Below, piece after piece: positions 1 through 58,583 of a stretch of DNA of 64,000 nt (positions within the stretch are counted from its first letter, which is position 1; each line of letters opens with the position of its first letter). The position numbers and the translations under genes were made by a program. This stretch comes from Macrostomum lignano (lineage: Eukaryota). The stretch lies in NCBI GenBank assembly GCA_002269645.1, contig NIVC01001724.1, forward strand, positions 91,919 through 155,918, written 5' to 3'. The notes below the pieces were generated by a model. That model saw nothing but the letters and a program-made list of their open reading frames with translations, was not told the origin of the DNA and did not search any database.

Positions 1-1530
1 CTTGGTGTTCGCCGCTCGTCTGTGTGAGGAAGAAAACCGGGGAAATCAGACTTTGCGTGGACTATAGAAAGCTGAATGAAGTGACGGTGAAAGATGCAGT
101 CCCGATGCCTCGAGTCGATGATGCCCTGGAGGCTCTTCACGGAGCGAAGATTTTCTCCACCATGGACTTGCATAGTGGCTTTTGGCAGGTGAGCGTCAAA
201 GAGGCCGATCGAGGGAAGACTGCATTCGCTGTACCGAATAGAGGCCAGTTCAAATGAAAGGTCATGCCCTTCGGATTGGTGAACAGCCCGGCGACTTTCA
301 CTCGGCTCATGGCAGCAGTTCTCAGCAAACAGATGTGGAGAACATGTCTCGCCTACATGGATAGCGTGCTAGTATGGTCGACGGACGTGAAGGAGCACCT
401 AACGAGGCTTGAGGAAATCTTTGGCAGACTTCGCGAACCAAACCTGTGCCTGAAGCCACAAAAATGCCATTTTTTGCTGGCCGAAGCGGAGTTCCTCGGT
501 CATAAGATCTCGGTATTCGGCGTGAGCACCGAGGCATCGAAGGTACATGAGATAGAATCCTGGCCTACACCAGCGAACGTCGCCGAACTTAGATCGTTTC
601 TGGGCCTGTGTGGATACTATAGAAAGTTTATCCAAGGTTTTGCTGAAGTCGCTTCCCCGTTGACTCGACTCGTCGGGCGTCGCATTCACATGGAACGAAA
701 AGCAGCAAAAAGCATTCGAGTCTCTGTAGAGTCGGCTAACGAGTGCTGAAGTCATGGCTTATCCGGATTTCTCCCCTGAAGCTGGCGAGTTAATTCTAGA
801 TACCGATGGCAGCTCAAAGCTGAGCCGTGCTGTCGCAAGTCCAGGCCGACAGCACTGAGCGCGTAATCGCCTACGCCTCGAAAACGTTAAATCAAGCAGA
901 GCGAAATTACTGCACAACTCGGTCAGAACTTCTGGCTGTAGTGACCTTCGTCTCTCAGTTCCGCTATTATTTGCTGGGGAAACCGTTCTGCTTGCGAACA
1001 GATCACAGTAGCTTACAATGCCTCTAGAATTTCCAAGATGCAGAAGGACAAGTCGCCCGCTGGCTAGAGAAGCTTGCAGCGTTTCAGTATCGGATCGTAC
1101 ACAGACCGGGGCGTAACCATGGAAACGCAGATGCTTTATCGAGGAAACCAAGTTAAGTCGACGACATCCAGGCGCTTCGACTTGTCCGTCCTGTGCCTGC
1201 AAAGCAACGATCCTGAACGCGATTGGTTTTGAATCGACGTTACCAGCGGACCTGGCACGTGAGCAACGCAACGATCCAGACCTGGCAGTTGTGCGTGAAG
1301 CGCTGAGGAGCAATTGAGAACTCGCAAGGGAAGAACTAAAGAGCTGGAGACTAACCGCAAGAAGCATCTACTGGGCCTTGTTGCTTCAAGAAGAGGTGCT
1401 CTTCGTCAAGGACCCAAAGACGAGGGAGCAACAGAAGTTAATCCTGCCGGTCGGTTTAATGTCGGAAACTTTGAAGAGTCTGCATCAAGGTGTGGGAGGG
1501 GGCCATGCCGGTTTCGCGAAGACAAAATTC
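1..1530 (+). mobile_element. Decayed Ty3/Gypsy LTR-retrotransposon pol fragment (RT, RNase H, start of integrase)
   Basis: Translations give RLCVDYRKLN, MDLHSGFWQV, MPFGLVNSPATF and AYMDSV (YxDD degraded). RNase H-type ELLAVV...YLLGKPFCLRTDHSSL...RWLEKL...HRPGRNHGNADALSR follows, then the integrase Zn-binding LHQGVGGGHAG. In-frame stops at ~255 and ~1025, frameshifts, and abrupt truncation into AT-rich DNA at ~1530. Confidence 0.92.
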
Positions 1531-2911: not shown

Positions 2912-3929
2912 ATGCACCCCTGCGCTAGGCCCTAATAATAATATAGAAATTTCAGTAGACCTATCTGATGCCAATGCCCAAGCAGCCCAATGAATAAAAA
3001 AAATAAAAAATTTGCCACTTTTCAAAATGAATAAGAACTACATTGTTCAGTCTAATCATTATTTAAACCATATTTTAGCAATGAAAATAAACCAACAAAA
3101 TCTAAAGTTGTACTTGTGCTCTTTTGCTAAAAAATTTAAAACTGGCAATTTAGAAATTGGGAATAAAGGTTCTATTATATTATATTTATTTATTTATAGA
3201 CCTATCTAGCTCATTATAGCCTAAACATCTTGCAACTATGCCTATCTAGTTAGTATCTAATCAATCCAGCAACAGACAATCTGGCAACAGTCAATCTGGC
3301 AACATATATTAAATCAATATATATCAGCATATATATGGATTAGTTGAGCTATTTTTTAGCTCTTTATTATTATCTATTAACACTCAAACAAATAAATTTT
3401 AATTACATAAACTATAATTATTGCAGTTATATTTTTACAGCTGTATGTAGCTGCTGATTTTCAAAATGTTATTTTTAGAGACAATCTATTTAAGAGCCTA
3501 ATCTGCTTGGAAAGCAAGTTTGTATGACTATGATCCAATATTGTTGTATATATTGTATTTGCACTAATATTCAAAAGTTGAAGAACCAAAAAATTGCTAT
3601 TTGCACTGTAACTTGTACATGTTATTTGCCATGCTAAAAATACAATTCTATTTAATGTAACAAATGCTATGTGGATAAGTTAATAATATTACCTTAATCA
3701 TACATGCCCAACACCCGCCCAACCTGTCCAAACTGGACAGGTAAAATGGCCGCTGGCCAAGGTAAGTTGCAAAATTGAAAATGCAAAAACCAAAAAATTG
3801 GGAGAAGAAAGGAGAGGAAGAGAAAAGGAAAAGAAAGGAGGGAGAAGAGAGAAGGAGGAAAGAGGAGAAAGAAAGAAAAAGAAAAGAAAAGAGAAAAAGG
3901 CAAGAAAAGTCATATACAAAGTGAAAATT

Positions 3930-4247
3930 AAGTCGCAATTGGGAGGAACTAAGTTGCAATCGAGAGGAACTAAGTCGCAATCAGGAGGAACTAAGTCGCA
4001 ATCGGGAGGGACTAAGTTGCAATCGAGAGGAACTAAGTCACAATCGGGAGGAACTAAGTCACAATCGGGAGGAACTAAGTTGCAATTGAGAGAAACTAAG
4101 TCGCAATCAGGAGGAACTAAGTCGCAATTGAGAAGAACTAAGTTGCAATCGGGAGGAACTAAGTCGCAATCAGGAAGAACTAAGTCGCAATCAGGAAGAA
4201 CTAAGTCGCAATCAGGAAGAACTAAGTCGCAATCAAGAGAAACTAAG
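3930..4247. repeat. 21-bp minisatellite (GGAGGAACTAAGTCGCAATCG) inside the hAT-like element
   Basis: About 15 tandem copies read directly. Confidence 0.9.
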
Positions 4248-4364
4248 TAGTCTTGAATCCCATATTCTAAATCGTCTAAAAATCCTCTGTAAAGCCTTTC
4301 AAATACCATATTTTGTTTTCCCTGTTTGCAAAAACTGACTTCCATTGTCCAGACTCAGACTCTC

Positions 4365-14060: not shown

Positions 14061-14226
14061 GCACACGGAGACAGTAAAACATTAGATGAATGGCTGACAA
14101 TGACTCATCTATCATGCACGTGATTCATCAATCCCAAACATGACCATTGCCATGATATCATGCATCATTAATCTAATTCCTACATTAATAAATGTTCGTC
14201 TCTCCCTACATCTCCCTCCACTCCAG

Positions 14227-17200
14227 GCTTCAACCTCGTCTCCGTACTTTCAGTCTGAGGAAAATTCTACAAAGAAATCCGCCGCTAGCCGTGGCGCCAA
14301 TTCAAAATCGCAAAATCGCAAGCGCCGCTCCCAGCCGGTGCCAATCGCTTACGAAGAGTCGGTCGGTGAGGCTGCTGACGAACTGGTTGCCGCGGCGCCG
14401 GCGCCGGCCAAGTGGGAGGCGCAGCTGGCTAACATTAAACTGATGCGAGCGGATAAAAGTGCTCCAGTTGACAATATGGGCTGTCACACTCTCGCCGACG
14501 GGGCGGCCGAACCCAAGGTTTGTTCGTTTTGAGAGTGCATTGATTTAGCCGGGCACCCTGCTGCGGTGAAGTAGAAGCTCTGAGCAGGGGCGTGGCCAGC
14601 ATTCTTCATTGATGGCTGCCGTTTCATTTAAGGGGATGCCATTAATTTGAGGGCAGCACCAGGGGCGCCAGCACCAAGGGCGCCAGCACCAAGGGCGCCA
14701 GCACCAGGGGCGCCAGCACCAAGGGCGCCAGCACCAAGGGCGCCAGCACCAAGGGCGCCAGCACCAGGGGCGCCAGCATCAGTGGCGCCAGCACCAAGAA
14801 GCGCCAGCACCAGGAGCGCCGGCACCAAGGAGCGTGGCAGGCGAGCATTCTACCACCGCTCTGCCTGTTTGAGGGGGCAATTAGTAGCCGTTGCAGTCAT
14901 CCACTGCGGTGGCTGCATATCGGCGTACAGGGACCCGATGTTGGACACGTGAACGGTGCCCCCCTGTCCCCAGCAGGGGGGCACCGGACACGTGCTGGGT
15001 AGGAGCGCCAGCACCAAGGGCGCCAGCACCAGGGACGTCAGTAACCCTCATAAGTAGGGCACAGTGTGGGGAGTAGCGATCCGCCCCCGCAGTCTAAATA
15101 GTTCGATGATAAATCGATTCCACAAAGTGACGACTGCCCACTAACCTGGCAAAATATATCATATTTGATTGATGATTTTTCAGGCTTTAAGCTGAACTGA
15201 GTGTGCGCCTCCCGTCCTTATGTTTGATGCTGCAAGCAACAGTAGTTGCTGCATTTCCAATTTGCGTGAGACGGAGGCGGAGAGAGAGAGTTGCCAGGGT
15301 TAGGACAGGAGAACCTACATCTAGCTGCTATAGCTTATAGCTACTCAAACTTAATTAGCCTGCTCATCAGCCGCAGTCGTTATCGCAGATCTGACTGAGA
15401 GAGATCGGCTCCTTATCATCAGCCGCCGAGCGAATTCGATTCCGCCCCAATGTCTCTCTATCTTAGAAAGAGTCCAATTTTCTTATTTCTCTTCCCTGTC
15501 CCATCGCTGCCTGCCTGCGTTATTATTTAGAAGCAAAATTTTGAGGACCTGCCTGACAGCGGGCGGGAGGCCGTTTTCTTCTTGTACTCGTAAGGATTTT
15601 GAATCCGGGGATTTCCGTGTCTATTATTGATTCTTCCCACTCAATTACTGCCGCCCGTATCTCTCTGTATTGCCTGAGGCAGGGGTGTCGGCCTTCACTG
15701 CGCCTCTTTTTATTTATCTCTAGCTATGCCGGCTCAGCCTAGGTGGGTGCGTGCCCTCTCTCGATTCTTGCTATCCACTCTCTTTTAGCTCATCCGCTTC
15801 CAGCTAAACACTTCACCCTAACCTCTCTGCCCCTCTGTCTCAAACCCTCCCTAACCCCTTCTCCTACCCCTCCGATTCTAACCCTGTACACCCCTTCCTG
15901 ACGCCTCTCGTACTTACCTCTCTACCCCTCCCTACCCTCTCTACCCCTCCCTACCCTCTCTACCCCTCCCTACCCTCTCTACCCCTCCCTACCCTCTCTC
16001 TACCCCTCCCTACCCTCTCTACCCCTCCCTACCCTCTCTACCCCTCCCTACCCTCTCTCTACCCCTCCCTACCCTCTCTACCCCTCCCTACCCTCTCTAC
16101 CCCTCCCTACCCTCTCTCTACCCCTCCCTACCCTCTCTACGCCTCCCTACCCTCTCTACGCCTCCCTACCCTCTCTACGCCTCCCTACCCTCTCTACCCC
16201 TCCCTACCCTCTCTACGCCTCCCTACCCTCTCTACGCCTCCCTACCCTCTCTACGCCTCCCTACCCTCTCTACCCCTCCCTACCCTCTCTCTACCCCTCC
16301 CTACCCTCTCTACGCCTCCCTACCCTCTCTACGCCTCCCTACCCTCTCTACGCCTCCCTACCCTCTCTACCCCTCCCTACCCTCTCTACGCCTCCCTACC
16401 CTCTCTACGCCTCCCTACCCTCTCTACGCCTCCCTACCCTCTCTACCCCTCCCTACCCTCTCTCTACCCCTCCCTACCCTCTCTACCCCTCCCTACCCTC
16501 TCTCTACCCCTCCCTACCCTCTCTCTACCCCTCCCTACCCTCTCTCTACCCCTCCCTACCCTCTCTACCCCTCCCTACCCTCTCTACGCCTCCCTACCCT
16601 CTCTACGCCTCCCTACCCTCTCTACGCCTCCCTACCCTCTCTACCCCTCCCTACCCTCTCTACGCCTCCCTACCCTCTCTACGCCTCCCTACCCTCTCTA
16701 CGCCTCCCTACCCTCTCTACCCCTCCCTACCCTCTCTCTACCCCTCCCTACCCTCTCTACCCCTCCCTACCCTCTCTCTACCCCTCCCTACCCTCTCTCT
16801 ACCCCTCCCTACCCTCTCTCTACCCCTCCCTACCCTCTCTCTACCCCTCCCTACCCTCTCTCTACCCCTCCCTACCCTCTCTCTACCCCTCCCTACCCTC
16901 TCTCTACCCTTGTTCCTCTGTCTCTATCCTCTCTTCCTGTCTGCTTCTCTTTTCTATCCTCTATCCAAAACAAATTGTCTTAGTTTGCCCCTTCCGCCCT
17001 TCTATGCAGCCGCTTCAGTCCTCACGCCCTCAGTTCATTGTTTCTACGGCTGAAGCTGAAAAATAATTTTATATGCATATTATATTTCAGATTTCCATAA
17101 TTTGAATAAAAGCACTAGTATCATATTTATTTTCCTAATTTGAGATTCAATAAGCATTCCTTTTGGCTTTGATTGCAGATAGAAGCGCGATTTATCTTTC

Positions 17201-20200
17201 CTCTCTGTGCAGGCTGAATCTATAATATGGAATAATAATTTGAGAGCTGCCAGTAAAATAAATAATTTGCCACACTCGGCTGCACTGAAGTGCCGCCAGC
17301 CAACTGGCTTTTAAGCCTACTTAGAGACTATACCGATTTAGTCTAAAAAGGAGTTGGAAAGCTGAGTCTAAAAAATCTGACTTGAAAAATAGAGGTTCTC
17401 TGGCACTTTTAGCAACAATATACTATTATTAGCATTAGCGCACTGTCTTCACCGCTCCCAAAATGCTATAGAGATTCAGATTAAAGGGCCATACTGACAT
17501 AAGCACGCATTGTCATGAGAGCATACTGACATAAGCGCTGTCATGAGAGCATACTGACATAAGCGCTGTCATGAGCGCATACTGACATAAGCGCTGTTAT
17601 GAGCGCATACTGACATAAGCGCTGTCATGAGAGCATACTGACATAAGCACTGTCATGAGCGCATTCTGACATAAGCGCTGTCATGAGAGCATACTGACAT
17701 AAGCACTGTCATGAGCGCATTCTGACATAAGCGCTGTCATGAGAGCATACTGACATAAGCGCTGTCATGAGAGCATACTGACATAAGCACTGTCATGAGC
17801 GCATTCTGACATAAGCGCTGTCATGAGAGCATACTGACATAAGCGCTGTCATGAGAGCATACTGACATAAGCGCTGTCATGAGAGCATACTGACACAAGC
17901 GCTGTCATGAGCGCATACTGACATAAGCGCTGTTATGAGCGCATACTGACATAAGCGCGCACTTCTACAAGATCTTAGCACCTTGCCCGAGGTAATTGCG
18001 CTCTTATGCCATTGCACGCTTATCACATTTGTAAGGCAACAAAGTTTATTATTAGACGCTTAGTATATGCGATGAGTACACAAGTGTGTTTACACTGCCA
18101 GCGTACCAGTGCGTGCATGTGTATGCCCGATTTAGCAAGTTGCGATTAGAAGGTTTCCATTAAAGTGTGTCCTACTGTTTTGTACCTGAAAATTCTATTC
18201 ATGCTATTATGGATGGCAGCCAAAAATAACTATTCTTGGATGAGAGGTCAACTGACCCTCTTTGACCCCTCCTAGATCCGAAACGGTCTCCAGTCTTGGC
18301 AGCCATTGCTATATTGTCACAAATGGGATTCCGAGGGCCCACAAGGCCACACAAGTGGCACAAAAGGCCTCAAGTGCCACACAAGGCCTCACAAGTGGCA
18401 CACAAGGCCTCACAAGTGGCACAAAAGGCCTCAAGTGGCACACAAGGCCTCACAAGTGGCACACAAGGCCTTACAAGTGGCACACAAGGCCTCACAAGTG
18501 GCACACAAGGCCTTACAAGCGGCACACAAGGCCTCACAAGTGGCACACAAGGCCTCACAAATGGCACACAAGGCCTTACAAACACACCCTTACAAGTGGC
18601 ACACAAGGCCTTACAAGTGGCACACAAGGCCTTACCAGCGGCACACAAGGCCTCACAAGTGGCACACAAGGCCTTACAAGTGGCACACAAGGCCTCACAA
18701 GTGGCACACAAAGCCTCACAAGTGTCGCCCTACTTAGTCATAGCGCTTCGCTCTTTATTGGTGCTGGAAAGTGAATTCTTACAGGAAGGGAAATAGCGCC
18801 GCTGCTCAGGCAACTGCCAAGATAATTTCAGCCTGTTCTGAGTAGTGCTCATAATAAACCCTCCTCTTGTCGTGTCGCCATCTCGCTCGCTAACAATATC
18901 TCCGCAGGGCATCAATAATTTGTATTCCTTTTACGACTATAGCGACTATAGCGACAGATGGGATGAATGGGTATTTTTTAGATATCCATTGCTACGCCGG
19001 AGATGCAATCAGGCACAGTCAGGCTATGCGTGCCGTTAATTTCTCGTTGTCACTTTAGCAGTCAGCTGCGCTTGCTTGAAGTGCAACGGCTTCGCTCAGC
19101 ATGCTAGAAACATCTTAGTAGCATCTTATCCACTCTGTTCTATAAGACTGGATGCTTGTTGTCGCAATCCTGCCATATATTTGGATTAATTTGTTTATTC
19201 CTAGTGTATGAAATTATTATCGATACATATCGGTGGGTTGATAGCTCGGGACAGTTTATGATTCAGTGTTTTTTATTATTACACCTGCCCCAAATCGGCC
19301 AAATGTGTAACCGACATATAAGCCGCAGCTATTGCGCGGCGCATCTGAAGACTGCGTACGCTGTTCAGTCCAAGGACTGGGGGGTCGCCACACACAGCCT
19401 CAATTAACCCAGCTAATGCTGGCACCCATTTTACAGCTGGGTGAACTGAAGCAATGCAGAGTTAGTGTCTTGCTCAAGGATGCAAATTGTTCCGAGGGGA
19501 TTGAAAATCGAACCCCCGACCTTCAAGTCGTGATTCCGACGCTCTAACCACTAGGCTACAACCCCTATTGTAGACTAGTGTAGCCTAGAAGCTGGTTAAC
19601 TAAGATTTCTCGCTCATCCCGTCAGACATTTCGCTATCAAGTCCTGCTGTCCCTGATGCTATCCAGCCAGACTAAGGACGAAGTCACCGCGGCTGCTATG
19701 GCCCGCCTGAGGCGGCACGGCTGCACTCTGGATAACATTCTGGCCACGGACAATGCGGAACTGGGCCGCCTCATCTATCCCGTCGGATTCTGGAAGGTAA
19801 GCTGCTGATCGACTTTCTATGTTTGCCCTTTCACTGCTGCTCGAATAAACTCAATTTTCTCTAATACTTTTGTTCTCTGTTCCCCTCACTCTCCTCTCTG
19901 TTCCCCTCACTCTCCTCTCTGTTCCCCTCACTCTCCTCTCTGTTCCCCTCACTCCCCTCTCTGTTCCCCTCACTCTCCTCTCTGTTCCCCTCACTCTCCT
20001 CTCTGTTCCCCTCACTCTCCTCTCTGTTCCCCCACTCCCCTCTCTGTTCCCCTCACTCTCCTCTCTGTTCCCCTCACTCTCCTCTCTGTTCCCCTCACTC
20101 CCCTCTCTGTTCCCCTCACTCCCCTCTCTGTTCCCCTCACTCCCCTCACTGTTCCCCTCACTCTCCTCTCTGTTCCCCTCACTCCCCTCTCTGTTCCCCT

Positions 20201-23059
20201 CACTCCCCTCTCTGTTCCCCTCACTCTCCTCTCTGTTCCCCTCACTCCCCTCTCTGTTCCCCTCACTCTCCTCACTGTTCCCCTCACTCTCCTCACTGTT
20301 CCCCTCACTCCCCTCTCTGTTCCCCTCACTCTCCTCACTGTTCCCCTCACTCTCCTCACTGTTCCCCTCACTCTCCTCTCTGTTCCCCTCACTCTCCTCA
20401 CTGTTCCCCTCACTCCCCTCTGTTCCCTCACTCCCCTCTGTTCCCCTCACTCCCCTCTGTTCCCTCACTCCCCTCTGTTCCCCTCACTCCCCTCTCTGTT
20501 CCCCTCACTCCCCTCTGTTCCCTCACTCCCCTCTGTTCCCCTCACTCCCCTCTGTTCCCTCACTCCCCTCTGTTCCCCTCACTCTCCTCTCCGTTCCCCT
20601 CACTCCCCTCTGTTCCCCTCACTCCCCTCTGTTCCCTCACTCCCCTCTGTTCCCCTCACTCCCCTCTGTTTCCCTCACTCCCCTCTCTGTTCCCCTCACT
20701 CTTCTCTCTGTTCCCCTCACTCTCCTCTCTGTTCCCCTCACTCCCCTCTCTGTTCCCCTCACTCCCCTCTCTGTTCCCCTCACTCCCCTCTGTTCCCCTC
20801 ACTCCCCTCTGTTTCCCTCACTCTCCTCTCCGTTCCCCTCACTCCCCTCTCTGTTCCCCTCACTCCCCTCTCTGTTCCCCTCACTCCCCTCTGTTCCCCT
20901 CTCTCTCCTCACAATTTCAAATGCATACATTCAATCGCCTGTCTCCAATTTTTTCTTACATTCGTATAGTTTATACTGATTAATTAATGTATGCTTAGAA
21001 TTTATACAGATTCAATCCATTAGTAAATTTTACGACTAAATTTGGAGAATTGAAGCCTGCTCACATCCGGAGTGAATCTTGCTATCTGAGCTGTGTGCGT
21101 TTTTCTCCTTGTCTCTGGGACACGATCCCATGTCTACAGTGCCAGTGTAGTTGACTGCGTTTAAAATGCACTTTTACACTCTGATCTTTGGTCAATGGAT
21201 CATTATTTTGACCGATACTAGTTTCTCTTTGATTTAACCTACCATTTTAAAGAAATTCATTTTCTAGAGCCCTTGTTGTCCACCTTGCCTGAATTTCGTA
21301 TGCTTTACCTGGCATTCACAGTGGTTGCTATGGCCCCACCTGAGATCCAGACTGTGGTTGCTATGGCCTCACCTGAGATCAGACAGTGGTTGCTATGGCC
21401 CCACCTGAGATCAGACAGTGGTTGCTATGCCCCACCTGAGATCAGACAGTGGTTGCTATGCCCCACCTGAGATTCAGACTGTGGTTGCTATGCCCCACCT
21501 GAGATCCAGACTGTGGTTGCTATGCCCCACCTGAGATCAAACAGCTGTTGCTATGCCCCACCTGAGATTCAGACTGTGGTTGCTATGCCCCACCTGAGAT
21601 CAGACAGTGGTTGCTATGCCCCACCTGAGATCAGACAGTGGTTGCTATGCCCCACCTGAGATTCAGACTGTGGTTGCTATGCCCCACCTGAGATCAGACA
21701 GCTGTTGCTATGCCCCACCTGAGATCAGATAGTGGTTGCTATGGCCCCACCTGAGATTCAGACTGTGGTTGCTATGCCCCACCTGAGATTCAGACTGTGG
21801 TTGCTATGCTACTAACTAAACTAACAAACGGCCCCATCAATGTCCCTAGAAAAAGGTAGACTACATCAAACGGGCCAGCCAGGCGCTCAAGGACAGCCAC
21901 TCCGGTGACATTCCGGACAGCGTGGCCGGCCTGTGCAGCCTGCCGGGCGTCGGGCCAAAGATGGCGCACATCGCCATGCGCTGCGCCTGGGACCGGCTGA
22001 CGGGAATCGGGGTGGACACCCACGTGCACCGGATTGCTGCCCGGCTGGGCTGGACTAAGAAGGCAAAGGAGCCGGAGGATACTAGGAAACAATTGGAGGC
22101 CTGGCTGCCCAGGTGAGACTACCGATATGTAGAGTGAATAATTATCTACAAAAAGTTAATAAAGTTCTAAAGCTTGTTTAAAAGGTCTTCAACACGCCTT
22201 GGTGTGGTCGGACTAGTCAACGGAGTGCAGGTCGCAGTCGGGGCCCAGCACCACGCCCTTCAGCACGCGGACGCAGCGGCCACGGACGGAGATGTTCTCG
22301 GTCTCCTGGCGGATCTCCTTGCCGCCCAGGGTCTTGGTCTTGGTCCTCGGCTCCGGCGAGCACCCGGCCTTCTCCTCATCCATTTTCCATTTTAGGCTTT
22401 CACCCTCGCAGAGGGTGTGCCTCACCCCACGGCTCTTAGGGATCGTCGTTGTCGCACTTCCTGCGGTGTCGCGCCATGTTGGTCATGTTGATCGCACCAG
22501 CAAGGTTCTTCCGATGCTTTTGGATCTCTTTTTCCTGTTTGTTTTCTCATTTGCCGTGTTCTGTTCGATGCAAGCAGATGCAAGGATGCGATGCAAGGAA
22601 GGCAAGCAGGCAGGCAGGCAGGAAGGCAGGCAGGCGGGCAGGCAGGCAGGCAAGCAGGCAGGCAGGCAGGCAGGCAAGCAGGCAGGCAGGCAAGCAGGCA
22701 GGCAAGCAGGCTATTATCCGAGCCACTGGTGTACTCTTATCTAAGTGTTGTGTAGTTGGTTTACATGTAGCTCGTATGTACATCTGTTTGGCGATATTGA
22801 TCTGTCGCTGGCTAAAATGTAAAATTTCCGGTATAAGGCCGGTAAGCACAGGACACCTGCTTATTTTTAACACAGAGCGGCTCTATACCCGCCCTCCCAT
22901 TCCAGAGAGCACTGGTCCGAGGTCAACCAGCTGCTTGTGGGATTCGGGCAGCAGCTGTGCACCCCGGTGAATCCCAGGTGCTCAGATTGTCTTAACAAGG
23001 CCGTCTGCCCCAGCGCGAAACTCTCCAAGGCTAAGATCAGCAAATCCGAAACTGTTTGA
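14227..23059 (+). CDS. NTHL1: Endonuclease III-like DNA glycosylase/AP lyase (HhH-GPD, 4Fe-4S)
   Basis: Exons 14227-14517 ([12 protein letters not shown]...APVDNMGC), 19626-19796 ([20 protein letters not shown]...LIYPVGFWK), 21850-22112 (Hh[21 protein letters not shown]) and 22906-23059 ([28 protein letters not shown]-x6-C-x2-C-x5-C, TGA). All GT-AG introns have matching phases. The start exon is uncertain; candidates are 13212-13241 or 13284-13307. Confidence 0.95.
14655..14830. repeat. 15-bp minisatellite (GCGCCAGCACCAAGG)
   Basis: About 11 copies in an NTHL1 intron. Confidence 0.9.
15915..16910. repeat. 19/21-bp pyrimidine minisatellite (ACCCTCTCTACCCCTCCCT)
   Basis: About 50 copies. The minus strand is G-rich. 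Confidence 0.95.
17488..17958. repeat. 28-bp minisatellite (GCATACTGACATAAGCGCTGTCATGAGA)
   Basis: About 17 copies. Confidence 0.95.
18335..18725. repeat. 21-bp minisatellite (CACAAGTGGCACACAAGGCCT)
   Basis: About 18 copies. Confidence 0.95.
19270..19565 (-). mobile_element. tRNA-derived CORE-type SINE
   Basis: On the minus strand: A-box TAGCCTAGTGG (19558-19548) and B-box GGTTCGATT (19514-19506). These are followed by CCTTGAGCAAGACACTAACTCTGCATTGCTTCAGTTCACCCAGCTGTAAAATGGG, which resembles the MIR/CORE central domain. Confidence 0.7.
19870..20905. repeat. 19-21-bp minisatellite (CTCTGTTCCCCTCACTCTCCT)
   Basis: About 50 copies in an NTHL1 intron. Confidence 0.95.
21325..21810. repeat. 31-33-bp minisatellite (GTGGTTGCTATGCCCCACCTGAGATCAGACA)
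   Basis: About 15 copies ending about 40 bp before the HhH exon acceptor. Confidence 0.95.
22213..22425 (-). pseudogene. Coding-like fragment nested antisense in the last NTHL1 intron, paralogous to the 24506-24826 secreted protein
   Basis: Strongly GC3-biased codons. [37 protein letters not shown] aligns ungapped with DCPSGSFSMSKNLGGKQITQVFERMQTKLGCIWVLQG. No in-frame signal peptide was found. Confidence 0.5.
22605..22710. repeat. (CAGG)n microsatellite
   Basis: Read directly. Confidence 0.95.
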
Positions 23060-23328
23060 CCTTGAGGTTATTCGCCTGAGCTAGAGCTCAGGTCAAGTAC
23101 CCACTCAATTGGGGTAAGCGAACTGGGTTTAATTGCATAAGCAGACTGAGTTTCATGCGATAAGCAGACGGACCTTTTTGTGCAATTTTTTTCATTTATT
23201 AATCCATAAAACCCCTTTGCTCTCTACTGCAGAAGTAGTGTATAGCGAACATGCTATCCGCATTTTGTTTACATTGGCTCAGTTCGAGCACTGCAAACAT
23301 TTGATCACCACAGCAATAAGCCTTTGTT

Positions 23329-23650
23329 GCTCATCTGCTGCTACTCTTGTTCTGTCTGCATTACCTGCTGAAAAGCATTTGGTTAGTACATTGTGTTCTA
23401 TTGGAATTTTATAGTACAAATATATACGCCACTTGTCTCTAGTTAGCTCTGTTGGTATGCAGTTATTTTTCTTATAATTCCGTTAATATTCCTAACGAGT
23501 TTTTTGCGTAGCAACTTTTTTATTTTATGTAGCTGCTTATGAGTGCCTTTCATTTTACATGAAATTCAAAGTTCAACAAAGTTAGCAAGAAAATAACTCA
23601 AATATTGAGCTGCATATTGCACAAGAAATCAATTGTGTTAACAGAGATTA
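23329..23650 (+). repeat. Dispersed direct repeat, copy 1 (copy 2 at 27279-27583)
   Basis: Shared GCTCATCTGC...CCTGCTGAAAAG...TTTGGTTAGTACATTGTGTTCTATTGGAATTTTATAGTACAAAT...AATCAATT. Diverged, with indels. Confidence 0.85.
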
Positions 23651-24505
23651 TTGGGACTCATTGAGATAGGAAGGCTCACCCGACCGGAAATAATTTTCCT
23701 TTCAAAAACAGTAAGTGTGCCATTTGTGCCACAGCTATGCCCTTTGGCAGAGTTATAACTGTGTTTGTCTGTCCTTTTTGGCACACTTGCCACAAATAAC
23801 CTCTATTGCTAATTGGACAATTGTCTGCGACGCCATTATTTGCTTCGATTTCGGCAGATGACCGGCAGGTTGTCATTGCGACATGATCTGTTCAGACGCT
23901 CTAAAATGGCGCAATCGCGTTTGATTGACGCCATAAAAAAAGAACTAAAGCAGCAAATCACGCAGCATCTCGCTGTCCATCTCGATCAGCTCGTGGACCC
24001 AGCCGTCACAATTGACGTCATGCTGGACGACGGCAACGAACCACTGGATGCTTCACTTATGATCGCTCACATATCTTTTTGTTACTCAAACACTCTCCAA
24101 TCCTTATATTATAGCCGGTTGGTTTCGCCTTTATGTCCAACCTCGCCCGGACCAGGGTCACGGCGCGGGTAAATATCTATAAAGATTCAACAACTCTGGC
24201 CAACCTCAGTGCGCTTCTCCGCAAGATGGTGCGAGGGTGCTTCAGCGACGAAGCGGGGGCGCCGCCGCTGATAGACAGACAGATAGCCAGGATAGAATTG
24301 AAATAGAGAAGCCGATGATTCACCTGATTCGATGCGGATAAAATCGTTAGGAAAAGCTTTACTGCTGGGGCTCTGTCTCATTCAGTATATTTCTCTCTCA
24401 ATCGAGTCTTCGGTAGGTGGAACAAACAGTTTAAACAGTCCAACTCGACTCAGCTGGAATCCAGGAGTTCAAGGGCACGGCCTTTTGTAGTTAAAGTGGT
24501 TCACG

Positions 24506-24826
24506 CTATACATTCGGCAGTCGGGGGCCCCTGATTAGTAAGCACCCTGAGCTGAGCCTCAGTCTGGGTTCCATCTTGCAGGCGATGCCTGACCCGGACA
24601 TTCGGCAGTGCTTGCACCACTTGGCCTGGACAAAGTCCTCGGGTGTGCCACCCTGAAGCACCCAGATGCAGCCCAGCTTAGTTTGCATCCGCTCAAAGAC
24701 CTGCGTGATCTGCTTGCCGCCGAGGTTCTTTGACATAGAAAAGCTCCCGCTGGGGCAATCAGCGGAGCCTACGGCGACGCCAACGAAAAGGGCCAGCAGG
24801 CAGATCGGCATTGGGATCAGTTTCAT
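24506..24826 (-). CDS. Small secreted Cys-rich protein of unknown function (106 aa, intronless)
   Basis: ATG start, signal peptide MKLIPMPICLLALFVGVAVG, six Cys in the mature part, GC3-rich codons, TATAAAT about 95 bp upstream. Confidence 0.65.
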   Translation of the reverse strand: MKLIPMPICLLALFVGVAVGSADCPSGSFSMSKNLGGKQITQVFERMQTKLGCIWVLQGGTPEDFVQAKWCKHCRMSGSGIACKMEPRLRLSSGCLLIRGPRLPNV

Positions 24827-24917: not shown

Positions 24918-24924
24918 ATTTATA
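24918..24924 (-). promoter_or_regulatory. Putative TATA box of the secreted-protein gene
   Basis: TATAAAT on the minus strand upstream of ATG 24826. Confidence 0.4.
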
Positions 24925-25689
24925 AGCAGCCGAATGGGATTCCAACTGCTGAGGGGCTGCATGGGTCGGGGAAAGACGGGAGCCACCGCAGTCCGCTGGC
25001 CGAAGGGGGACATCAGTCAACGTCTGCCTTCTGGACGGCAGCTGGTTCTTTTGTCGGCTTGCCTGGACATAAAAGAAAGAGGAGCCGCTGCAGGAAGGCG
25101 AGGCTTGCGGACCACCTGCCTCTCGGAGTCCCCGCTTGTCCACGGAGTTCTAGAACTAAGAGCCTGGAGTGAAGATCAGAGAGTCAGCTGCATTTCACCA
25201 AAGCCTGCCGGACTCGTGCGAGCCACAGAGCTGCATTCGATTGTAAAACTGGGGTTTGGGGTGGGTGCAGTTGGTTTCCACTCCGGATCGCTAATTCTAG
25301 AGCTCCATGGGCGGTCTGGGTCGTGGAGTCATGGCGAGACCATTGGAACAGTCAATGACTGTCGCCAGTCTGAGAGGCAAACAATGGTGCGGTTTTTCGG
25401 AGAGCCAGAAGCTCAAAGCCGGACTAGGGCTCTCTTCAAGGCAGCAAAAAATGTCAGCTGACCTACTTTTGTTACACATACGAGCTTGAACACTCGCCTG
25501 TTTCTCTGTAGGCAGCACTCTTCATACTACTGAAGCAAGTAATGCAATAAAATAAACTGTAATACTTCCTTTTATTAAGTTACAGTGTACACGTATGAAA
25601 TTAATAGGTACATTTTAAAAAACTACAGGATTGTCATTTGGGCACTGCTAAAATGAGATTAGATACATAGATAGATAGATATTAGGTGA

Positions 25690-31603: not shown

Positions 31604-34600
31604 CTAAAGTCCAAACAGAACGGGCACTCTGACTGCGTCATCTTCGTCCTCCTGATGACAGCCGGCGGCAGCGGCGGCGACTTCTGTCGGAGCAGCGTCG
31701 GTGGCGGCTGAGGAGGCCGTGGAATCCGGTTCGGCGACGAGAGACGCCAGCAGCAGGGCTCGGTGCTCGGGCCTGGCCGATGCCAGCTGCTCAGCACCGG
31801 CGTCGAGTCGGCTCAGCACCTCCTGGAGCATCGCTGACCGATGCTGTCGGTGCTGCTGCTGCTGCTGCTGTTGATGACTGCTGTCTGCTTGCTGTAGTCC
31901 GGCACGAAGTTCTGAAATTGTGGCACGAAGCAGTCCACACTGAAGTAACTGAGGGAGAGCCGCAGCCCACACTGAAGTAACTGAGGGAGAGCTGCAGTCC
32001 ACACTGAAGGAACTGATGGAGAGCTGCAGTCCACACTGAAGTAACTGAGGAAGAGCCGCAGTCCACACTGAAGGAACTGAGGAAGAGCTGCAGTCCACAC
32101 TGAAGGAACTGAGGGAGAGCTGCAGTCCACACTGAAGGAACTGAGGGAGAGCTACAGTCCACACTGAAGGAACTGAGGGAGAGCTGCAGCCCACACTGAA
32201 GGAACTGAGGGAGAGCTGCAGTCCACACTGAAGGAACTGAGGGAGAGCTGCAGTCCACACTGAAGGAACTGAGGGAGAGCTGCAGTCCACACTGAAGGAA
32301 CTGAGGGAGAGCTGCAGTCCACATTGAAGGAACTGAGGGAGAGCTGCAGCCCACACTGAAGGAACTGAGGGAGAGCTGCAGTCCACACTGAAGGAACTGA
32401 GGGAGAGCTGCAGTCCACACTGAAGGAACTGAGGGAGAGCTGCAGCCCACACTGAAGGAACTGAGGGAGAGCTGCAGTCCACACTGAAGGAACTGAGGGA
32501 GAGCTGCAGCCCACAAGCCCCATTAAATCTCGCACTGATTTCTGCATAAAAACTGCCATCTTTTCCAAATTTGTCTCAAAACAAGCTCATTTCATAACTA
32601 GGTCAGGCACACCGCTTTTACAATGGTAGAAAAGCATTGTTATGGCCTACAAGTGTACCTAGCTGGTTCGAGAGTCTGCATTTTCGGGGCAGCGGCCCCA
32701 GCATTAAAATACTATATCTATGCTCGGGCTTTCGTCCACAGGGCAGTCACAAAGGGAGAGAGAGGGGGTGAGAGGCCAGAGAAGACAATGGAAACGTGCC
32801 GTCCACGTGAACGACTGCCTACTCTGGGTTGACTGAAACGATGGCTCAATATGTAAGGGCTGTTGCAATTCATTTTTGACTATGAAGCTTTGAGCTCAAT
32901 AGGATTTTCTAGCTCATTCACCCAGCTAAACTCAGCCAACCCCCCCTCTTTCGTAGGTTTTTCCATTGAGCTTGGAAAAGCACTGTATAGTAACGTATAG
33001 GCTGTCTTGCGGCTCTCCATGCTTTGCATCTTTTTCTGGTATTTTAAAAAGGTAGTTTCAATGGAACTGAAAAGCAACCTGTATTGATGCTGACCGGTTT
33101 TTTAGTTATTATTTAACTTTGTCTAAGCTAGACTGCCTAATGAACTCTATATTAAAAACAAACATTTAGCTTACCATCCTCAGTATGCTCTCCCATGAGT
33201 AGAATGATGTCGCGAATGACATCACGCTTAGCCTCTTGTATGGTGCTCAACAATTGATTGCACATTTCGCCTATTTGCTTTGCCAAGTTCTCTGCAGTGA
33301 AAGCGATTTTAGAAGCTTAATTTTCTAAGCTAGTAATTTTTTACCAAATAATTTCGAAATCCTACCATTACTGAGCTACTTACAGAAATTTACTGTCTAT
33401 GGCCAGGCCCTTAGCTGAATGCATTGAGTGTCTATGGCCAGATCATAGCTTAATTCCTTGAGGTGTCTATGGCCGGATCATAGCTGAATGCATTGAGTGT
33501 CTATGGCCAGATCATAGCTTAATTCCTTGAGGTGTCTATGGCCGGATCATAGCTGAATGCATTGAGTGTCTATGGCCAGGCCATAGCTGAATGCATTGAG
33601 TGTCTATGGCCAGGCCATAGCTGAATGCATTGAGTATCTATGGCCAGGCCATAGCTGAATGCATTGAGTATCTATGACCAGGCCATAACTGAATGCATTG
33701 TCTATGGTCAGGCCATAGCTGAATGCATTGAGTATCTATGGCCAGATCATAGCTGAATGCATTGAGTATCTATGACCAGGCCATAACTGAATGCATTGAG
33801 TGTCTATGACCAGGTAATAGCTTAATGCATTGAGTGTCTATGGCCACATCATAGCTTAATTCCTTGAGTGTCTATGGCCGGATCATAACTGAATGCATTG
33901 AGTGTCTATGGCCAGGCCATAACTGAATGCATTGAGTATCTATGACCAGGCCATAACTGAATGCATTGAGTGTCTATGGCCAGGCCATAGCTGAATGCAT
34001 TGAGTGTCTTTAGCCTGGTTCTAGCTGAATCTAGACCAACACCGAAAAGCAAATCTTGGAAACTTACCAAACTGATCTAGAAGCGGTTCGAATTCGAACT
34101 CCCGTCCTCGCAGCAGCCATTTAAGTCGATCGACTAAAGCGACTGTAAGCAACTTTCCCGACTCAGTTGGTAGGATTAGGCAACTTGCCAAGAATTGACG
34201 CGTCGCGGAGGCCAACAAAATTGGCGCCCAATTGGCTGCAGCCGCGCCAAAGTTTCCGTTTGAATTGTCCGACCGGTGCTCCAAACGGCGCTTGTTCCAC
34301 CGGAACAGAGTGGCCAGACAGGACCGCTCCAGGTCGGTGAGTCGAGCCGCCAGAGTCTCAGGCGCGTCAAGCGGGATCAGAGCGTCGCGCACGAGTTCAA
34401 AGCTAATGGGCATGGACTCCTGGCGCGGTTGGCTGTCGTTGAGAGCGGTCCAATTGCCGGCTTCATCTTCCCAGAATCCGTCGTACTGGCTATTTTCGGT
34501 GTCTGTCGGGCTGGGTAGCGATGGACGCGGCGTCACGGCCAGGTTTGAGGACTGGTCCGCCATACGGAGCATGTCCTCAGCTTCCAGGCGAGTCCAGTGC

Positions 34601-35930
34601 CGGTGCCTCTGCGGTGGGGAGAGGGGTTATCTTAAGGTGTCGCAGATAGACTGAGACTAATGCCTTTATGACTCAAAAATCTCCGCGACCTCAGAACCTC
34701 AGGAGAAAATCTGCATGCTACTAGGCCTCGGGGAGTAAGCGTACTAGACCTCGGGGAGTAAGCGTACTAGGCCTCGGGGAGTAAGCGTACTAGGCCTCGG
34801 GGAGTAAGCGTACTAGGCCTTGGGGAGTAAGCGTACTAGGCCTCGGGGAGTAAGCGTACTAGGCCTCGGGGAGTAAGCGTACTAGGCCTCGGGAGTAAGC
34901 GTACTAGGCCTTGGGGAGTAAGCGTACTAGGCCTCGGGGAGTAAGCGTACCAGACCTCGGGGAGTAAGCGTACCAGACCTCGGGGAGTAGAATTCTACAG
35001 GTTAGGTTCATTGCAGCTTTTATATGAACCATATAAAAACGTACTGCGATGTGCTGAATAAAATGAGTAAAATGCAAACGAGGTCGAACGAACGATTGGC
35101 AGAGGATCTTACAAGATGCGGATGTGCATCAGTCTCGATGTCATTCCAAGAGCGCGGGTCTTGCAGACGGCTGCAAATTCGATTAAGAATACGAGCGGGT
35201 AAAAATTAGTGAATCCAAATAGAAGCCTGTGCAATGGAAGAACTCACTGAGCCTCACTTACCGCTGACAATCATTCCGGCATCGAGACACCTGTCCCACC
35301 TGCAGCCCTGACAGTGGTTTCTCCTCTGCAGTCGCAGGTCGCAGTCTCGATTGAAGTGGCAGTCATAGATGTGCCGGTCTTTTACCGACCGCTCGAAGAA
35401 TGACTTGCAACTGTTGAGACACATGGGCGCATTTTGAGCTAAGTTTGAGAATCATTACAGTATACACTGATTTATTGTAAAGCCATCAAGCTTCATGTCT
35501 CGGTAATGCAACTTTTTGTAAAAGGCCAACTCTAAATCATAAAAGGCACTTTTATCTGGATACATTCTCGAAATTAAAGTTTTCAACATCAAAAGAGGAA
35601 GGAAATGACAGTGGCTCACCTGTCGCAGGTGACTGCACCGTAGTGCCAGCCGGAGGCCTCGTCTTCGCACACCACGCACGCCACTTCGCTGCTCCCTGCG
35701 CTGGCGCCTTCCAAGCGGAAGCGTCTCTTCCTGTCGACTCGACTCCGACCGGCTGTCGCTCTCTCCATGACTCTGCGCGAACTCAACCGACGTCGGCTGA
35801 GCGCCTGCTGGCACACGGCGGTGCCGCAGGCGGCCAAGCTGCAGCCAGTTCGATCTTTGACAAATGGAATGCCGAACTGGCTAAAAAGCCTGTTGATCAT
35901 CTCGCTACTGCTGCGGCTGCTTTCGTTCAT
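31604..35930 (-). CDS. Divergent nuclear hormone receptor (C4 zinc-finger DBD plus degenerate LBD)
   Basis: Exons: 35930-35620 (CVVCEDEASGWHYGAVTCD), 35410-35262 (SCKSFFERSV...CHFNRDC...RRNHCQGCRWDRCLDAGM), 35170-35113 (AVCKTRALG), ~34608-34068 (LFRWNKR, NWAPILL), 33291-33175, and 31911-31604. All junctions have matching phases except exon 3 to exon 4. A short 5'UTR intron lies at 35987-35934. Confidence 0.85.
31925..32515. repeat. 32-bp intronic minisatellite (CAGTCCACACTGAAGGAACTGAGGGAGAGCTG)
   Basis: About 18 copies abutting the last NR acceptor. Confidence 0.95.
33400..34010. repeat. 34-bp intronic minisatellite (GAGTGTCTATGGCCAGGCCATAGCTGAATGCATT)
   Basis: About 18 copies. Confidence 0.95.
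34720..34990. repeat. 23-bp intronic minisatellite (CTAGGCCTCGGGGAGTAAGCGTA)
   Basis: About 11 copies. Confidence 0.95.
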
Positions 35931-50089: not shown

Positions 50090-50866
50090 ATGTCTGACAG
50101 CATCGTTGGATTGCAAGCTCCTGCACAAGTGCAGCGTGAGGATCTGAATTCCGAACTGTTGCAAAACCGCCTAGCATTTGTCCTTCACAACGTTCTTAAC
50201 AAGTACGAGTGCGCCGCCGTGATTCGAGCTGCTGAAGGTGTCGGATTCAAGCCGGCCACAGTGCGCACTGGCTTCAAAACTATGGAGTACCAGCCAGACT
50301 TTCGCGTTGGCGATAATTCCTACCTGACCGATGTGGACATCCGAGAAACGATTTTTCAGCGCATCAGGCCGCACTTGCCGCCAAAGTTCGGCTTCGGTAA
50401 GCTGGTTGGTCTCAACGAGCGCATGACTTTGCTGCGCTATGGTCCCGGCGGGTTCTTCGGCGAGCACAGGGACGGAACCTACATCACGGCAGATGACTCG
50501 GCAATCAGCTTCATCACTGTCCAGCTCTATCTCAATGAAGGATTCGAAGGAGGCGAGACAACCTTCTTTCCAGATGGACTGATGCGCGCAGGCGACAAGC
50601 CTGAAGATCGTCGACGAGTGGCGATGATGCCGCGCACCGGTTCGGCAGTGATCTTCGAGCACAAGATTCTGCACGAGGGCAGCCTGGTGCAAAGCGGAGT
50701 AAAGTTCACACCTCGGGCTGACGTTCTCTACTCAAGGTATTATCCTCCAACTGGCACAGATTTTGATAGGGTCAATGGCAAGACGGATGAACCTACTGAA
50801 TCAGGTTTTCCACCGATATCATTGAGTGAAAGACAGAGCTTGTGGTCCAGGTGTGCGGTGCAATAG
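50090..50866 (+). CDS. 2-oxoglutarate/Fe(II)-dependent oxygenase (prolyl-4-hydroxylase-like, 2OG-FeII_Oxy_3 type), intronless
   Basis: LNERMTLLRYGPGGFFGEHRDG (HxD), FITVQLYLNEGFEGGETTF, PRTGSAVIFEHKILHEG (distal His), GVKFTPRADVLY. TATAAAT at 50014-50020. Confidence 0.9.
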   Translation: MSDSIVGLQAPAQVQREDLNSELLQNRLAFVLHNVLNKYECAAVIRAAEGVGFKPATVRTGFKTMEYQPDFRVGDNSYLTDVDIRETIFQRIRPHLPPKFGFGKLVGLNERMTLLRYGPGGFFGEHRDGTYITADDSAISFITVQLYLNEGFEGGETTFFPDGLMRAGDKPEDRRRVAMMPRTGSAVIFEHKILHEGSLVQSGVKFTPRADVLYSRYYPPTGTDFDRVNGKTDEPTESGFPPISLSERQSLWSRCAVQ

Positions 50867-57593: not shown

Positions 57594-58583
57594 TTAAGCC
57601 TCCTCGTCTGCAGGCTGCTGTACCTGCCAGACAGGCTGAGTGTGCAGATGGCTGCAGGCCCTTAGAAAAGCCGCAATTGAAAGTGTACTTTCTCTAAGAT
57701 GTCTGCAATGCGTCTCGAAGGCAGCATTCACTCGTGCGTACCTGGCATGCACCTGCTGGTGATGAGTAACAGCCTGGCCCCTGTGAACTTGCTGCTGTAG
57801 CCGTCGCACCCGTTCAGCATCACGCTCTAGCAGGTCCAGCAGAAGGTAGAAGTTCAGCGGTTTCTGTCCACGCTTGTTGAGTTGACCATGCCAGGCTTCT
57901 ACGTCGTTGTTGGTCCTCTTGTACTGCTCGAAGACGCAGATAGCATCACGGTCCCAGACGGGATGCTGCAGCCAGGTAGTGCGCACATACTCGGCTAGCT
58001 GTAGGAGTAGCTCATTACCTATTGCCAGTTGAATGCAGGCTGCCAGACCATCAAGCATACAAGCGGACGGCAAGCATGGAATCGAGAGAAGCATGCGTAC
58101 AACCAACTTAACTGCTGGAACAGTGGAATACTGCACCTGAAGGCCAAGATTTTGGACACGCCTGAAGACAGCTTGACAATAATGGAAGAAGCAGCCGCGA
58201 ACTTGCGCACCTGGATATACCAGCCAAATTGCTTGCCAAGCAGCAGCTTCAAAGTCACAAGTGAACTTGATTGGCGCATTACCTGTTGACTCCCAAAGGC
58301 AACAAAAGCAGGCTTGATAATCAGCTTGAGCCTTACCGGACATCAAAAAGAAGGCAAGTGGTACCAGCCTTTCCTGCCCATCAAAGCGAATCGCGCCGTG
58401 TACACTGTAAAGCTGTTTGAAAGGTGCCTTGACAATGCTAAAAGTTCCGTCGCACTTCAAGATTCGTCGGGTTGACGGTGCACATGCACGGTGCTGCCAA
58501 TTCAAGCATTGAGAACACTCAATTGCTTCTTGTCCATCGCAAACTGGCTGCAGACAGACTACACATGGATATGCGCCTGCCAT
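57594..58583 (-). CDS. MULE (Mutator) DDE transposase with N-terminal partial PHD finger (329 aa)
   Basis: CVVC...IECSQCLNWQHRAC (PHD-like), then CDGTF (D1), VPLAFFLM, CDFEAA (D2), GCFFHYCQAV (CxxH), YVRTTW, and RTNNDVEAWH (E). No internal stops. Confidence 0.88.
   Translation of the reverse strand: MAGAYPCVVCLQPVCDGQEAIECSQCLNWQHRACAPSTRRILKCDGTFSIVKAPFKQLYSVHGAIRFDGQERLVPLAFFLMSGKAQADYQACFCCLWESTGNAPIKFTCDFEAAAWQAIWLVYPGAQVRGCFFHYCQAVFRRVQNLGLQVQYSTVPAVKLVVRMLLSIPCLPSACMLDGLAACIQLAIGNELLLQLAEYVRTTWLQHPVWDRDAICVFEQYKRTNNDVEAWHGQLNKRGQKPLNFYLLLDLLERDAERVRRLQQQVHRGQAVTHHQQVHARYARVNAAFETHCRHLRESTLSIAAFLRACSHLHTQPVWQVQQPADEEA

Follow-up and report, generated by a model that had tools for sequence, protein, structure and literature searches.

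The final 64 kb of Macrostomum lignano contig NIVC01001724.1 (assembly GCA_002269645.1), the window analysed here, contain two open reading frames (ORFs) of particular interest, ORF A (24506-24826, minus strand) and ORF B (22213-22425, minus strand), the latter in the last intron of NTHL1. We consider both to be decaying copies of a family of small secreted proteins found so far only in M. lignano, A a frameshifted paralogue and B a dead fragment, and put the probability of this reading at about 70%. The first-pass annotation of this DNA had paired the two ORFs through a short shared motif and read them as an unrecognised, diversifying family of secreted effectors with one member hidden in the intron. 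A secreted family, restricted to this lineage on present data, does exist, but its copies in the window are a fragment and a probably dead paralogue rather than hidden effector genes.

The family behind ORFs A and B

By alignment and profile search, the homology between A and B is real. The ungapped alignment that first brought them together holds 14 identities in 38 residues (BLASTP 28.5 bits, pairwise E 2e-6), and its Smith-Waterman score of 63 was reached by none of 5000 shuffles (mean 24.7, standard deviation 4.5, maximum 50; Gumbel fit p ~1e-5). In mutual tblastn searches over the six frames of the window A and B found each other at E 1e-3 and 4e-4, with the next best matches at 0.6-0.75. 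Fourteen identities are few and an in-window E of 1e-3 is modest, which could suggest two unrelated GC-rich ORFs that look alike by chance. This is hardly credible, as not only do the shuffles fall short, but A (E 1e-12) and B (E 2e-26) independently match one annotated family, and a chance match is refuted both by the profile search described below and by tblastn of the family on the window. Because intact family proteins match exactly these two places in the window and nothing else (P0021 and P0034 cover 24524-24820 of ORF A), the homology is settled independently of the original alignment. Other features first described for the pair also held up: B does lie on the opposite strand within the last NTHL1 intron (22113-22905, plus strand), the codons are rich in G+C at third positions (GC3 0.75 in A and 0.95 in B, similar to local exons), and the two have diverged at the nucleotide level, with 53% identity over the aligned 114 nucleotides (nt).

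The first-pass annotation had proposed a profile built from A and B, and an exhaustive HMMER search of 1.84 billion representative proteins with such a profile found three further clusters of the family. Its matches were P0019 (E 5e-26), P0020 (2e-25) and P0021 (8e-15), all from M. lignano. A fourth match, a repetitive 930-aa protein at E 6e-4, was regarded as spurious, and no credible match from any other species occurred among these proteins; the proposed lineage-specificity stands so far. With their 90% cluster mates the three proteins represent nine GenBank accessions: BOX15_Mlig016941g1-3 (PAA71976.1, PAA81313.1, PAA78254.1), Mlig034071g1/020370g1/033824g1 (PAA47438.1, PAA58920.1, PAA52487.1) and Mlig017461g1,g2/032188g1 (PAA50312.1, PAA88209.1, PAA94438.1). 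They are labelled 'hypothetical protein', 'Uncharacterized protein' or 'Secreted protein'. Neither Pfam searches at E<=10 with A, B, P0019-21, P0031 and P0032 nor a profile search of PDB sequences turned up anything relevant, so the family was indeed unrecognised in that sense, but nine of its accessions had already been annotated. Word-index protein searches with A and B returned no candidates, a weak null, as the same tool also missed M. lignano's own NTHL1 (114-aa query). Exact-sequence look-ups were empty for A, B, spliced A, frame-corrected A and an overlapping plus-strand ORF. The 14 shared residues nevertheless sufficed to reveal a real gene family, and for annotation the gain is two unannotated pseudogene-like copies of a family, nine accessions strong, that has neither a Pfam model nor a described function.

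The intact members agree with the description of a small, secreted, Cys-rich family. In the alignment each has a signal peptide and a domain of ~93 aa whose eight Cys are in register; two of the three clusters also have an acidic spacer, ~45 residues rich in D, E and A, after the signal peptide. The domain carries the motifs C-x9-(T/N)-LGGK-x-I-x-Q, Cys followed by x-(R/W)-V, S-C-x2-C and, at its C-terminus, GPDC-x2-H-x-VD-x2-D-x-TK-x-C. The LGGK-x-I-x-Q element after Cys1 is invariant in 10/10 aligned sequences, A and B among them. The coding sequences of the five intact genes fetched are exactly protein-length and hence single-exon. A TATA box lies ~100 nt upstream of the ATG in the three gene types examined (A, P0020 and P0021), reading ATAAAT/TATAAAT at about -110/-105 in the P0020 and P0021 genes. 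Intact members would be transcribed from this TATA promoter as a single-exon coding sequence, and their products would carry the signal peptide, in two of three subfamilies the long acidic spacer, and a domain that is net cationic by residue count, predicted to be all-beta and probably held by four disulfides.

Lesions in the two window copies

Fragment B is homologous to a Mlig016941-type gene, with 87-94% DNA identity to the Mlig016941 genes. DNA alignment places the homology at 22162..22380 (minus strand), 219 bp that run from codon 65 to 28 nt past the stop. Positions 22254-22380 are 93% identical (118/127) to codons 65-107 of the P0020 gene (locus L005), while 22162-22253 are 87% identical (80/92) to the last 21 codons of that gene, its stop and 28 nt of 3' untranslated region; loci L009 and L008 gave the same result. 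The junction between the blocks, at 22253..22254 (minus strand), marks a 108-bp (36-codon) in-frame deletion that took out Cys3-Cys6. A premature TAG at 22213..22215 (minus strand) replaces the Arg codon AGG of the P0020 gene, and SDHTKAC follows it in frame, up to the ancestral TGA stop at 22189..22191 (minus strand). Cys1, Cys2 and Cys7 lie before the TAG and Cys8 after it. The first 64 codons of the parent, with signal peptide and acidic spacer, are missing, as is the promoter. The hidden intronic member thus turns out to be a 5'-truncated, internally deleted and prematurely stopped fragment.

The same truncated fragment is present in the duplicate contig NIVC01004844.1, with two substitutions, both of them nonsynonymous and none synonymous. 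Comparison of the two contigs therefore dates B, a gene relic, to before the duplication of its genomic block. The idea that B arrived within a longer duplicated segment or on a transposon was considered and rejected: only the 219-bp fragment matches the parent loci, and the rest of the NTHL1 intron gave no match to them. Classical retroposition is also unsupported. The parent's AATAAA lies ~140 nt downstream of its stop, the homology is gone by 28 nt, and no A-run follows the fragment. Intron loss is uninformative on this point, as the parent coding sequences are already intronless. The suggestion that the family spreads as intronless copies is right about the single-exon structure of the intact genes, but B, with no poly(A) tract and with homology that stops 28 nt past the stop, does not support spread by retroposition.

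B might in principle have been exapted from the family, as a small working gene (56 aa, MDEEK...HSVD) or to regulate NTHL1 in antisense, but we think this very improbable. The homology does begin exactly at an ATG, both duplicate contigs preserve the ORF, and a GC3 of 0.95 might be taken as a sign of coding. However, the product would lack a signal peptide and contain three Cys, an odd number, four of the original eight having been deleted, and would end seven codons ahead of the ancestral stop. No promoter-like element was seen. The sole two differences between the duplicates change amino acids, and B has an omega (dN/dS) of 0.5-0.8 when compared with the parent genes. Nor is the high GC3 a sign of function: it was inherited from a recent GC3-rich parent, to which B is 93% identical. 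B seems best regarded as the defunct remnant of a Mlig016941-type gene that sits in antisense orientation in the last intron of NTHL1.

ORF A keeps much more of the gene. As encoded it has 106 aa, and by tblastn and alignment it is a divergent, fourth type of family copy that is 35-39% identical to all three clusters and runs colinearly with intact members from the signal peptide up to and including Cys6. Its signal peptide (24761..24826, minus strand; 22 codons), recognised by eye and by alignment with intact members, is a typical one, reading MKLIPMPICLLALFVGVAVGSA and ending in VGSA ahead of DC, and six Cys follow in the mature part. A TATAAAT box lies ~98 nt ahead of the start codon, at 24918..24924 (minus strand), and the duplicate contig has it too. 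A departs from the family frame at five consecutive C, 24523..24527 (minus strand), through a +1 frameshift relative to GPDC, and the encoded tail RLPNV with its stop stands in for the motif that begins GPDC. The +1 frame reads GAPDCRMYSVNHFNYKRPCP up to a stop. This tail (24469..24522, minus strand; DCRMYSVNHFNYKRPCP and a stop), compared with the C-terminal motif of intact members, has Cys7 and Cys8 at the conserved spacing. The signal peptide, TATA box and six Cys noted at first are thus all present, but the Cys number six merely because the frameshift cuts off the last two of eight.

Most likely A is a recently inactivated paralogue, with promoter, signal peptide and Cys1-6, in which a one-base frameshift in the C5 run would have removed Cys7-8. 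The point that weighs against this reading is the nature of the lesion, a frameshift in a homopolymer of a PacBio/Canu-based assembly (PMC5730564), with the +1 frame still open. The C5 run may be a mistake of the assembly, or the lesion may be very recent and perhaps polymorphic; A would then be an intact eight-Cys gene. A working A, either as a full eight-Cys protein of ~118 aa behind such an error or as a functional truncated variant with six Cys and 106 aa, would fit its intact TATA box, start codon, signal peptide and Cys1-6, its GC3 of 0.75 and the open tail with both Cys at family spacing. We nonetheless regard it as unlikely. The five C recur in the independently assembled duplicate contig NIVC01004844.1 (locus L004; 95-98% identity across the region), as do the lesions of B, and the A of that contig has in addition a 68-bp out-of-frame deletion just after Cys2. 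Two synonymous and five nonsynonymous changes separate the two copies of A (omega 0.6-1.1), and the substitutions in both A and B between the contigs look neutral. A and B, and likewise the A of the duplicate contig, are absent from the GenBank annotation, which was built from RNA-seq transcript models (PMC5730564), and neither AATAAA nor ATTAAA occurs within ~400 nt downstream of the ORF A stop.

An intron in ORF A was also considered, as the C-terminus of B matched A in another frame. It would have been ~120 nt long, with a weak GTGGCA donor at ~24652 and a TACTAAT-CAG acceptor at ~24531. It was ruled out, as the intact members are colinear with the supposed intron codons (GG-TP-E...C-x2-C...C...C) and GC3 is high there.

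An element of ~600 bp (24954..25552, minus strand) directly precedes ORF A and comes within 30 nt of its TATA box. It is 92% identical to positions 3725-4322 of locus L008, which lie 1.7-2.3 kb upstream of the family gene P0030 in the same relative orientation. It may represent a repeat dispersed in the genome or an upstream module common to the two loci.

The intact genes and the genomic setting

The family genes are dispersed and not tandem: no second copy was found within +/-6 kb of the five intact genes, nor elsewhere in the window. The close duplicates P0020 and P0033 are under purifying selection (omega 0.16), and omega between subfamilies is 0.5-0.8. No comparison exceeded 1 except that of P0021 with P0034, at 1.01, a pair that differs by four substitutions only. 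With dN/dS running from 0.16 to 0.8 outside that pair, these values do not show the family to be diversifying, as the first-pass annotation had it.

Between the two clusters here numbered 1 and 2 (L008 against L005/L009), synonymous divergence (dS) jumps about ten-fold inside the genes, from 0.02-0.07 in the first 104 codons to 0.36 in the last 56. Nonsynonymous divergence (dN) is 0.006-0.013 in the signal peptide and acidic spacer part and 0.29 in the C-terminal half. As dS jumps along with dN, the pattern is that of a mosaic and suggests gene conversion or recombination, not selection alone. Three independent rearrangement boundaries fall at the VL(K/Q)GG codons, namely the 108-bp deletion in B (22253/22254), the 68-bp deletion in the duplicate of A (L004 ~14142-14148) and the switch point of the cluster 1/2 mosaic. 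Taken together, the dS mosaic and the shared position of the three breakpoints hint that the paralogues recombine often.

The genome assembly, Mlig_3_7, is very repeat-rich and contains ~180 Mb of duplicated blocks at >=95% identity (PMC5730564). The host gene of B was placed by alignment to human NTHL1. Its penultimate coding exon (21850..22112, plus strand) and its last coding exon (22906..23059, plus strand, stop codon included) join into a gapless alignment at E 7e-44, and the 793-nt intron that they flank (22113..22905) has GT/AG ends and contains a (CAGG)n microsatellite as well as fragment B. NTHL1 as a whole (14140-23059, plus strand) is ~9 kb long because its introns are full of minisatellites and the (CAGG)n microsatellite. 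NTHL1 sequence is also found on the duplicate contig NIVC01004844.1, 93-98% identical, yet no NTHL1 gene has been called there.

Between the NTHL1 stop and ORF A are two adjoining ORFs (23880-24306, plus strand), convergent with ORF A. They read MAQSRLIDAIKKELKQQITQHLAVHLDQLVDPAVTIDVMLDDGNEPLD... and ...PVGFAFMSNLARTRVTARVNIYKDSTTLANLSALLRKMVRGCF...IELK before a stop and look protein-like; no Pfam match, no annotation and no clean splice or frame join was found for the pair. Elsewhere the window contains a reverse-transcriptase-like fragment (264-749, plus strand), an annotated zf-C4 nuclear-receptor gene (34533-35930, minus strand), a single-exon 2OG-Fe(II) oxygenase gene (50090-50866, plus strand) with an identical copy on a second contig, and an ORF for a Mutator-like element (MULE) transposase (57594-58583, minus strand).

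Beta-microseminoprotein and other known systems

The most interesting open point is whether the family descends from beta-microseminoprotein (PSP94, gene MSMB). An AlphaFold 2 (AF2) model of P0021, made from the family alignment, is all-beta, with a mean predicted local distance difference test score (pLDDT) of 73. Its best Foldseek match among 350,542 PDB chains is 6imf_B (E 0.06, probability 0.96, template-modelling (TM) scores 0.30/0.45), a chain of small serum protein 2, which belongs to the beta-microseminoprotein family. Aligning the family profile with MSMB by hhalign set Cys2-8 on C18, C37, C40, C49, C64, C73 and C87 (E ~0.01), and also paired the motifs C-x(2,3)-LKG and V-[DE]-x2-D-x2-K-x-C with MSMB. 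The score of 18.8 was reached by 0/400 column shuffles (mean 10.8, standard deviation 2.1). From the profile alignment and the predicted model, we give roughly even odds that the family is a distant relative of beta-microseminoprotein.

A fuller scenario can be put forward only tentatively. The family would be the first beta-microseminoprotein-like (PSP94) family in flatworms, an eight-Cys, intronless, multi-copy version with an acidic spacer. Its proteins might be secreted by glands, for example into seminal fluid or onto mucosal surfaces, and act by binding CAP/CRISP proteins or as antimicrobials. The genes would turn over fast through duplication, recombination near the VLKGG codons and pseudogenisation, and the copies in the window would be recent casualties of this process. 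PMC3435950 cites the binding of beta-microseminoprotein to CRISP-3 and describes CAP/VAL proteins in M. lignano. No report of MSMB-like proteins in flatworms was found in the literature searched, and look-ups of six Mlig gene identifiers in the full text and supplements of M. lignano papers gave no match that would inform on expression.

A number of results weigh against the MSMB link, which is statistically weak. There is no match to the Pfam PSP94 family (PF05825) even at E<=10 with A, B, P0019-21, P0031 or P0032, and no PDB sequence match for the family. The hhalign probability for MSMB is just 4% and the Foldseek E value 0.06. The AF2 model of P0020, a poorer one (pLDDT 64), gave no MSMB match in Foldseek, and two of the ten Cys of MSMB are missing from the family.

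Nearly as good as an even chance must be given to the family being a true orphan, arisen de novo or evolved beyond recognition, and unrelated to beta-microseminoprotein or any known fold. The empty Pfam and PDB sequence searches are what this would predict, as are the lack of any Foldseek match with E<0.001 for either the P0021 or the P0020 model and of any homologue outside M. lignano among the 1.84e9 representatives. It is harder to reconcile with seven Cys in the MSMB register at near-identical spacings, with two short motifs in common, and with a hhalign score that no column shuffle attained. The single best structural match among all the chains searched would also have to be an MSMB-family protein by coincidence.

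The intact proteins would most likely be soluble and extracellular, secreted by glands and acting in binding or as antimicrobials, and may be very divergent relatives of beta-microseminoprotein (PSP94). If the MSMB link is true, a fast-evolving secretory protein of vertebrates and other deuterostomes would extend to a flatworm model of sexual selection and seminal-fluid biology. It would also offer these otherwise orphan genes a concrete functional hypothesis, namely that their products bind CAP/CRISP proteins or act against microbes.

Set beside the annotated Mlig016941/034071/017461 proteins, the window copies have the same domain, motifs and Cys register, and ORF A also has their signal peptide and TATA layout. 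Like the Mlig017461 type, A lacks the acidic spacer. The annotated members are intact, with eight Cys and a signal peptide, whereas A is frameshifted before Cys7 and B lacks the N-terminal 64 codons and Cys3-6 and stops prematurely.

Precursors of toxins and antimicrobials, of the conotoxin or defensin type, combine a conserved signal and anionic propiece with a variable cationic mature part. Clusters 1 and 2 resemble such precursors in their nearly invariant signal peptide and acidic spacer and the far more divergent C-terminal half of their Cys domain, and the mature domain is, by its residue count, net cationic as well. The flatworm family differs from them in having no dibasic processing site, an omega below 1 and the jump in dS.

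The MSMB/PSP94 family (MSMB, small serum proteins, chicken MSMB3; PF05825) and the flatworm family are both ~90 aa, secreted, disulfide-rich and all-beta, the last two on the flatworm side by prediction. The flatworm coding sequences are intronless, unlike vertebrate MSMB genes, which contain introns. The flatworm proteins have eight Cys to the ten of MSMB, whose C42 and C50 have no counterpart; seven to eight of theirs align in register with MSMB, and they have an extra segment of ~11-13 residues with the LGGK motif as well as, in two subfamilies, the acidic spacer. The spacing of the Cys that do correspond is C2-x17-C3-x2-C4-x8-C5-x10-C6-x7-C7-x13-C8 in the flatworm family and C18-x18-C37-x2-C40-x8-C49-x14-C64-x8-C73-x13-C87 in MSMB.

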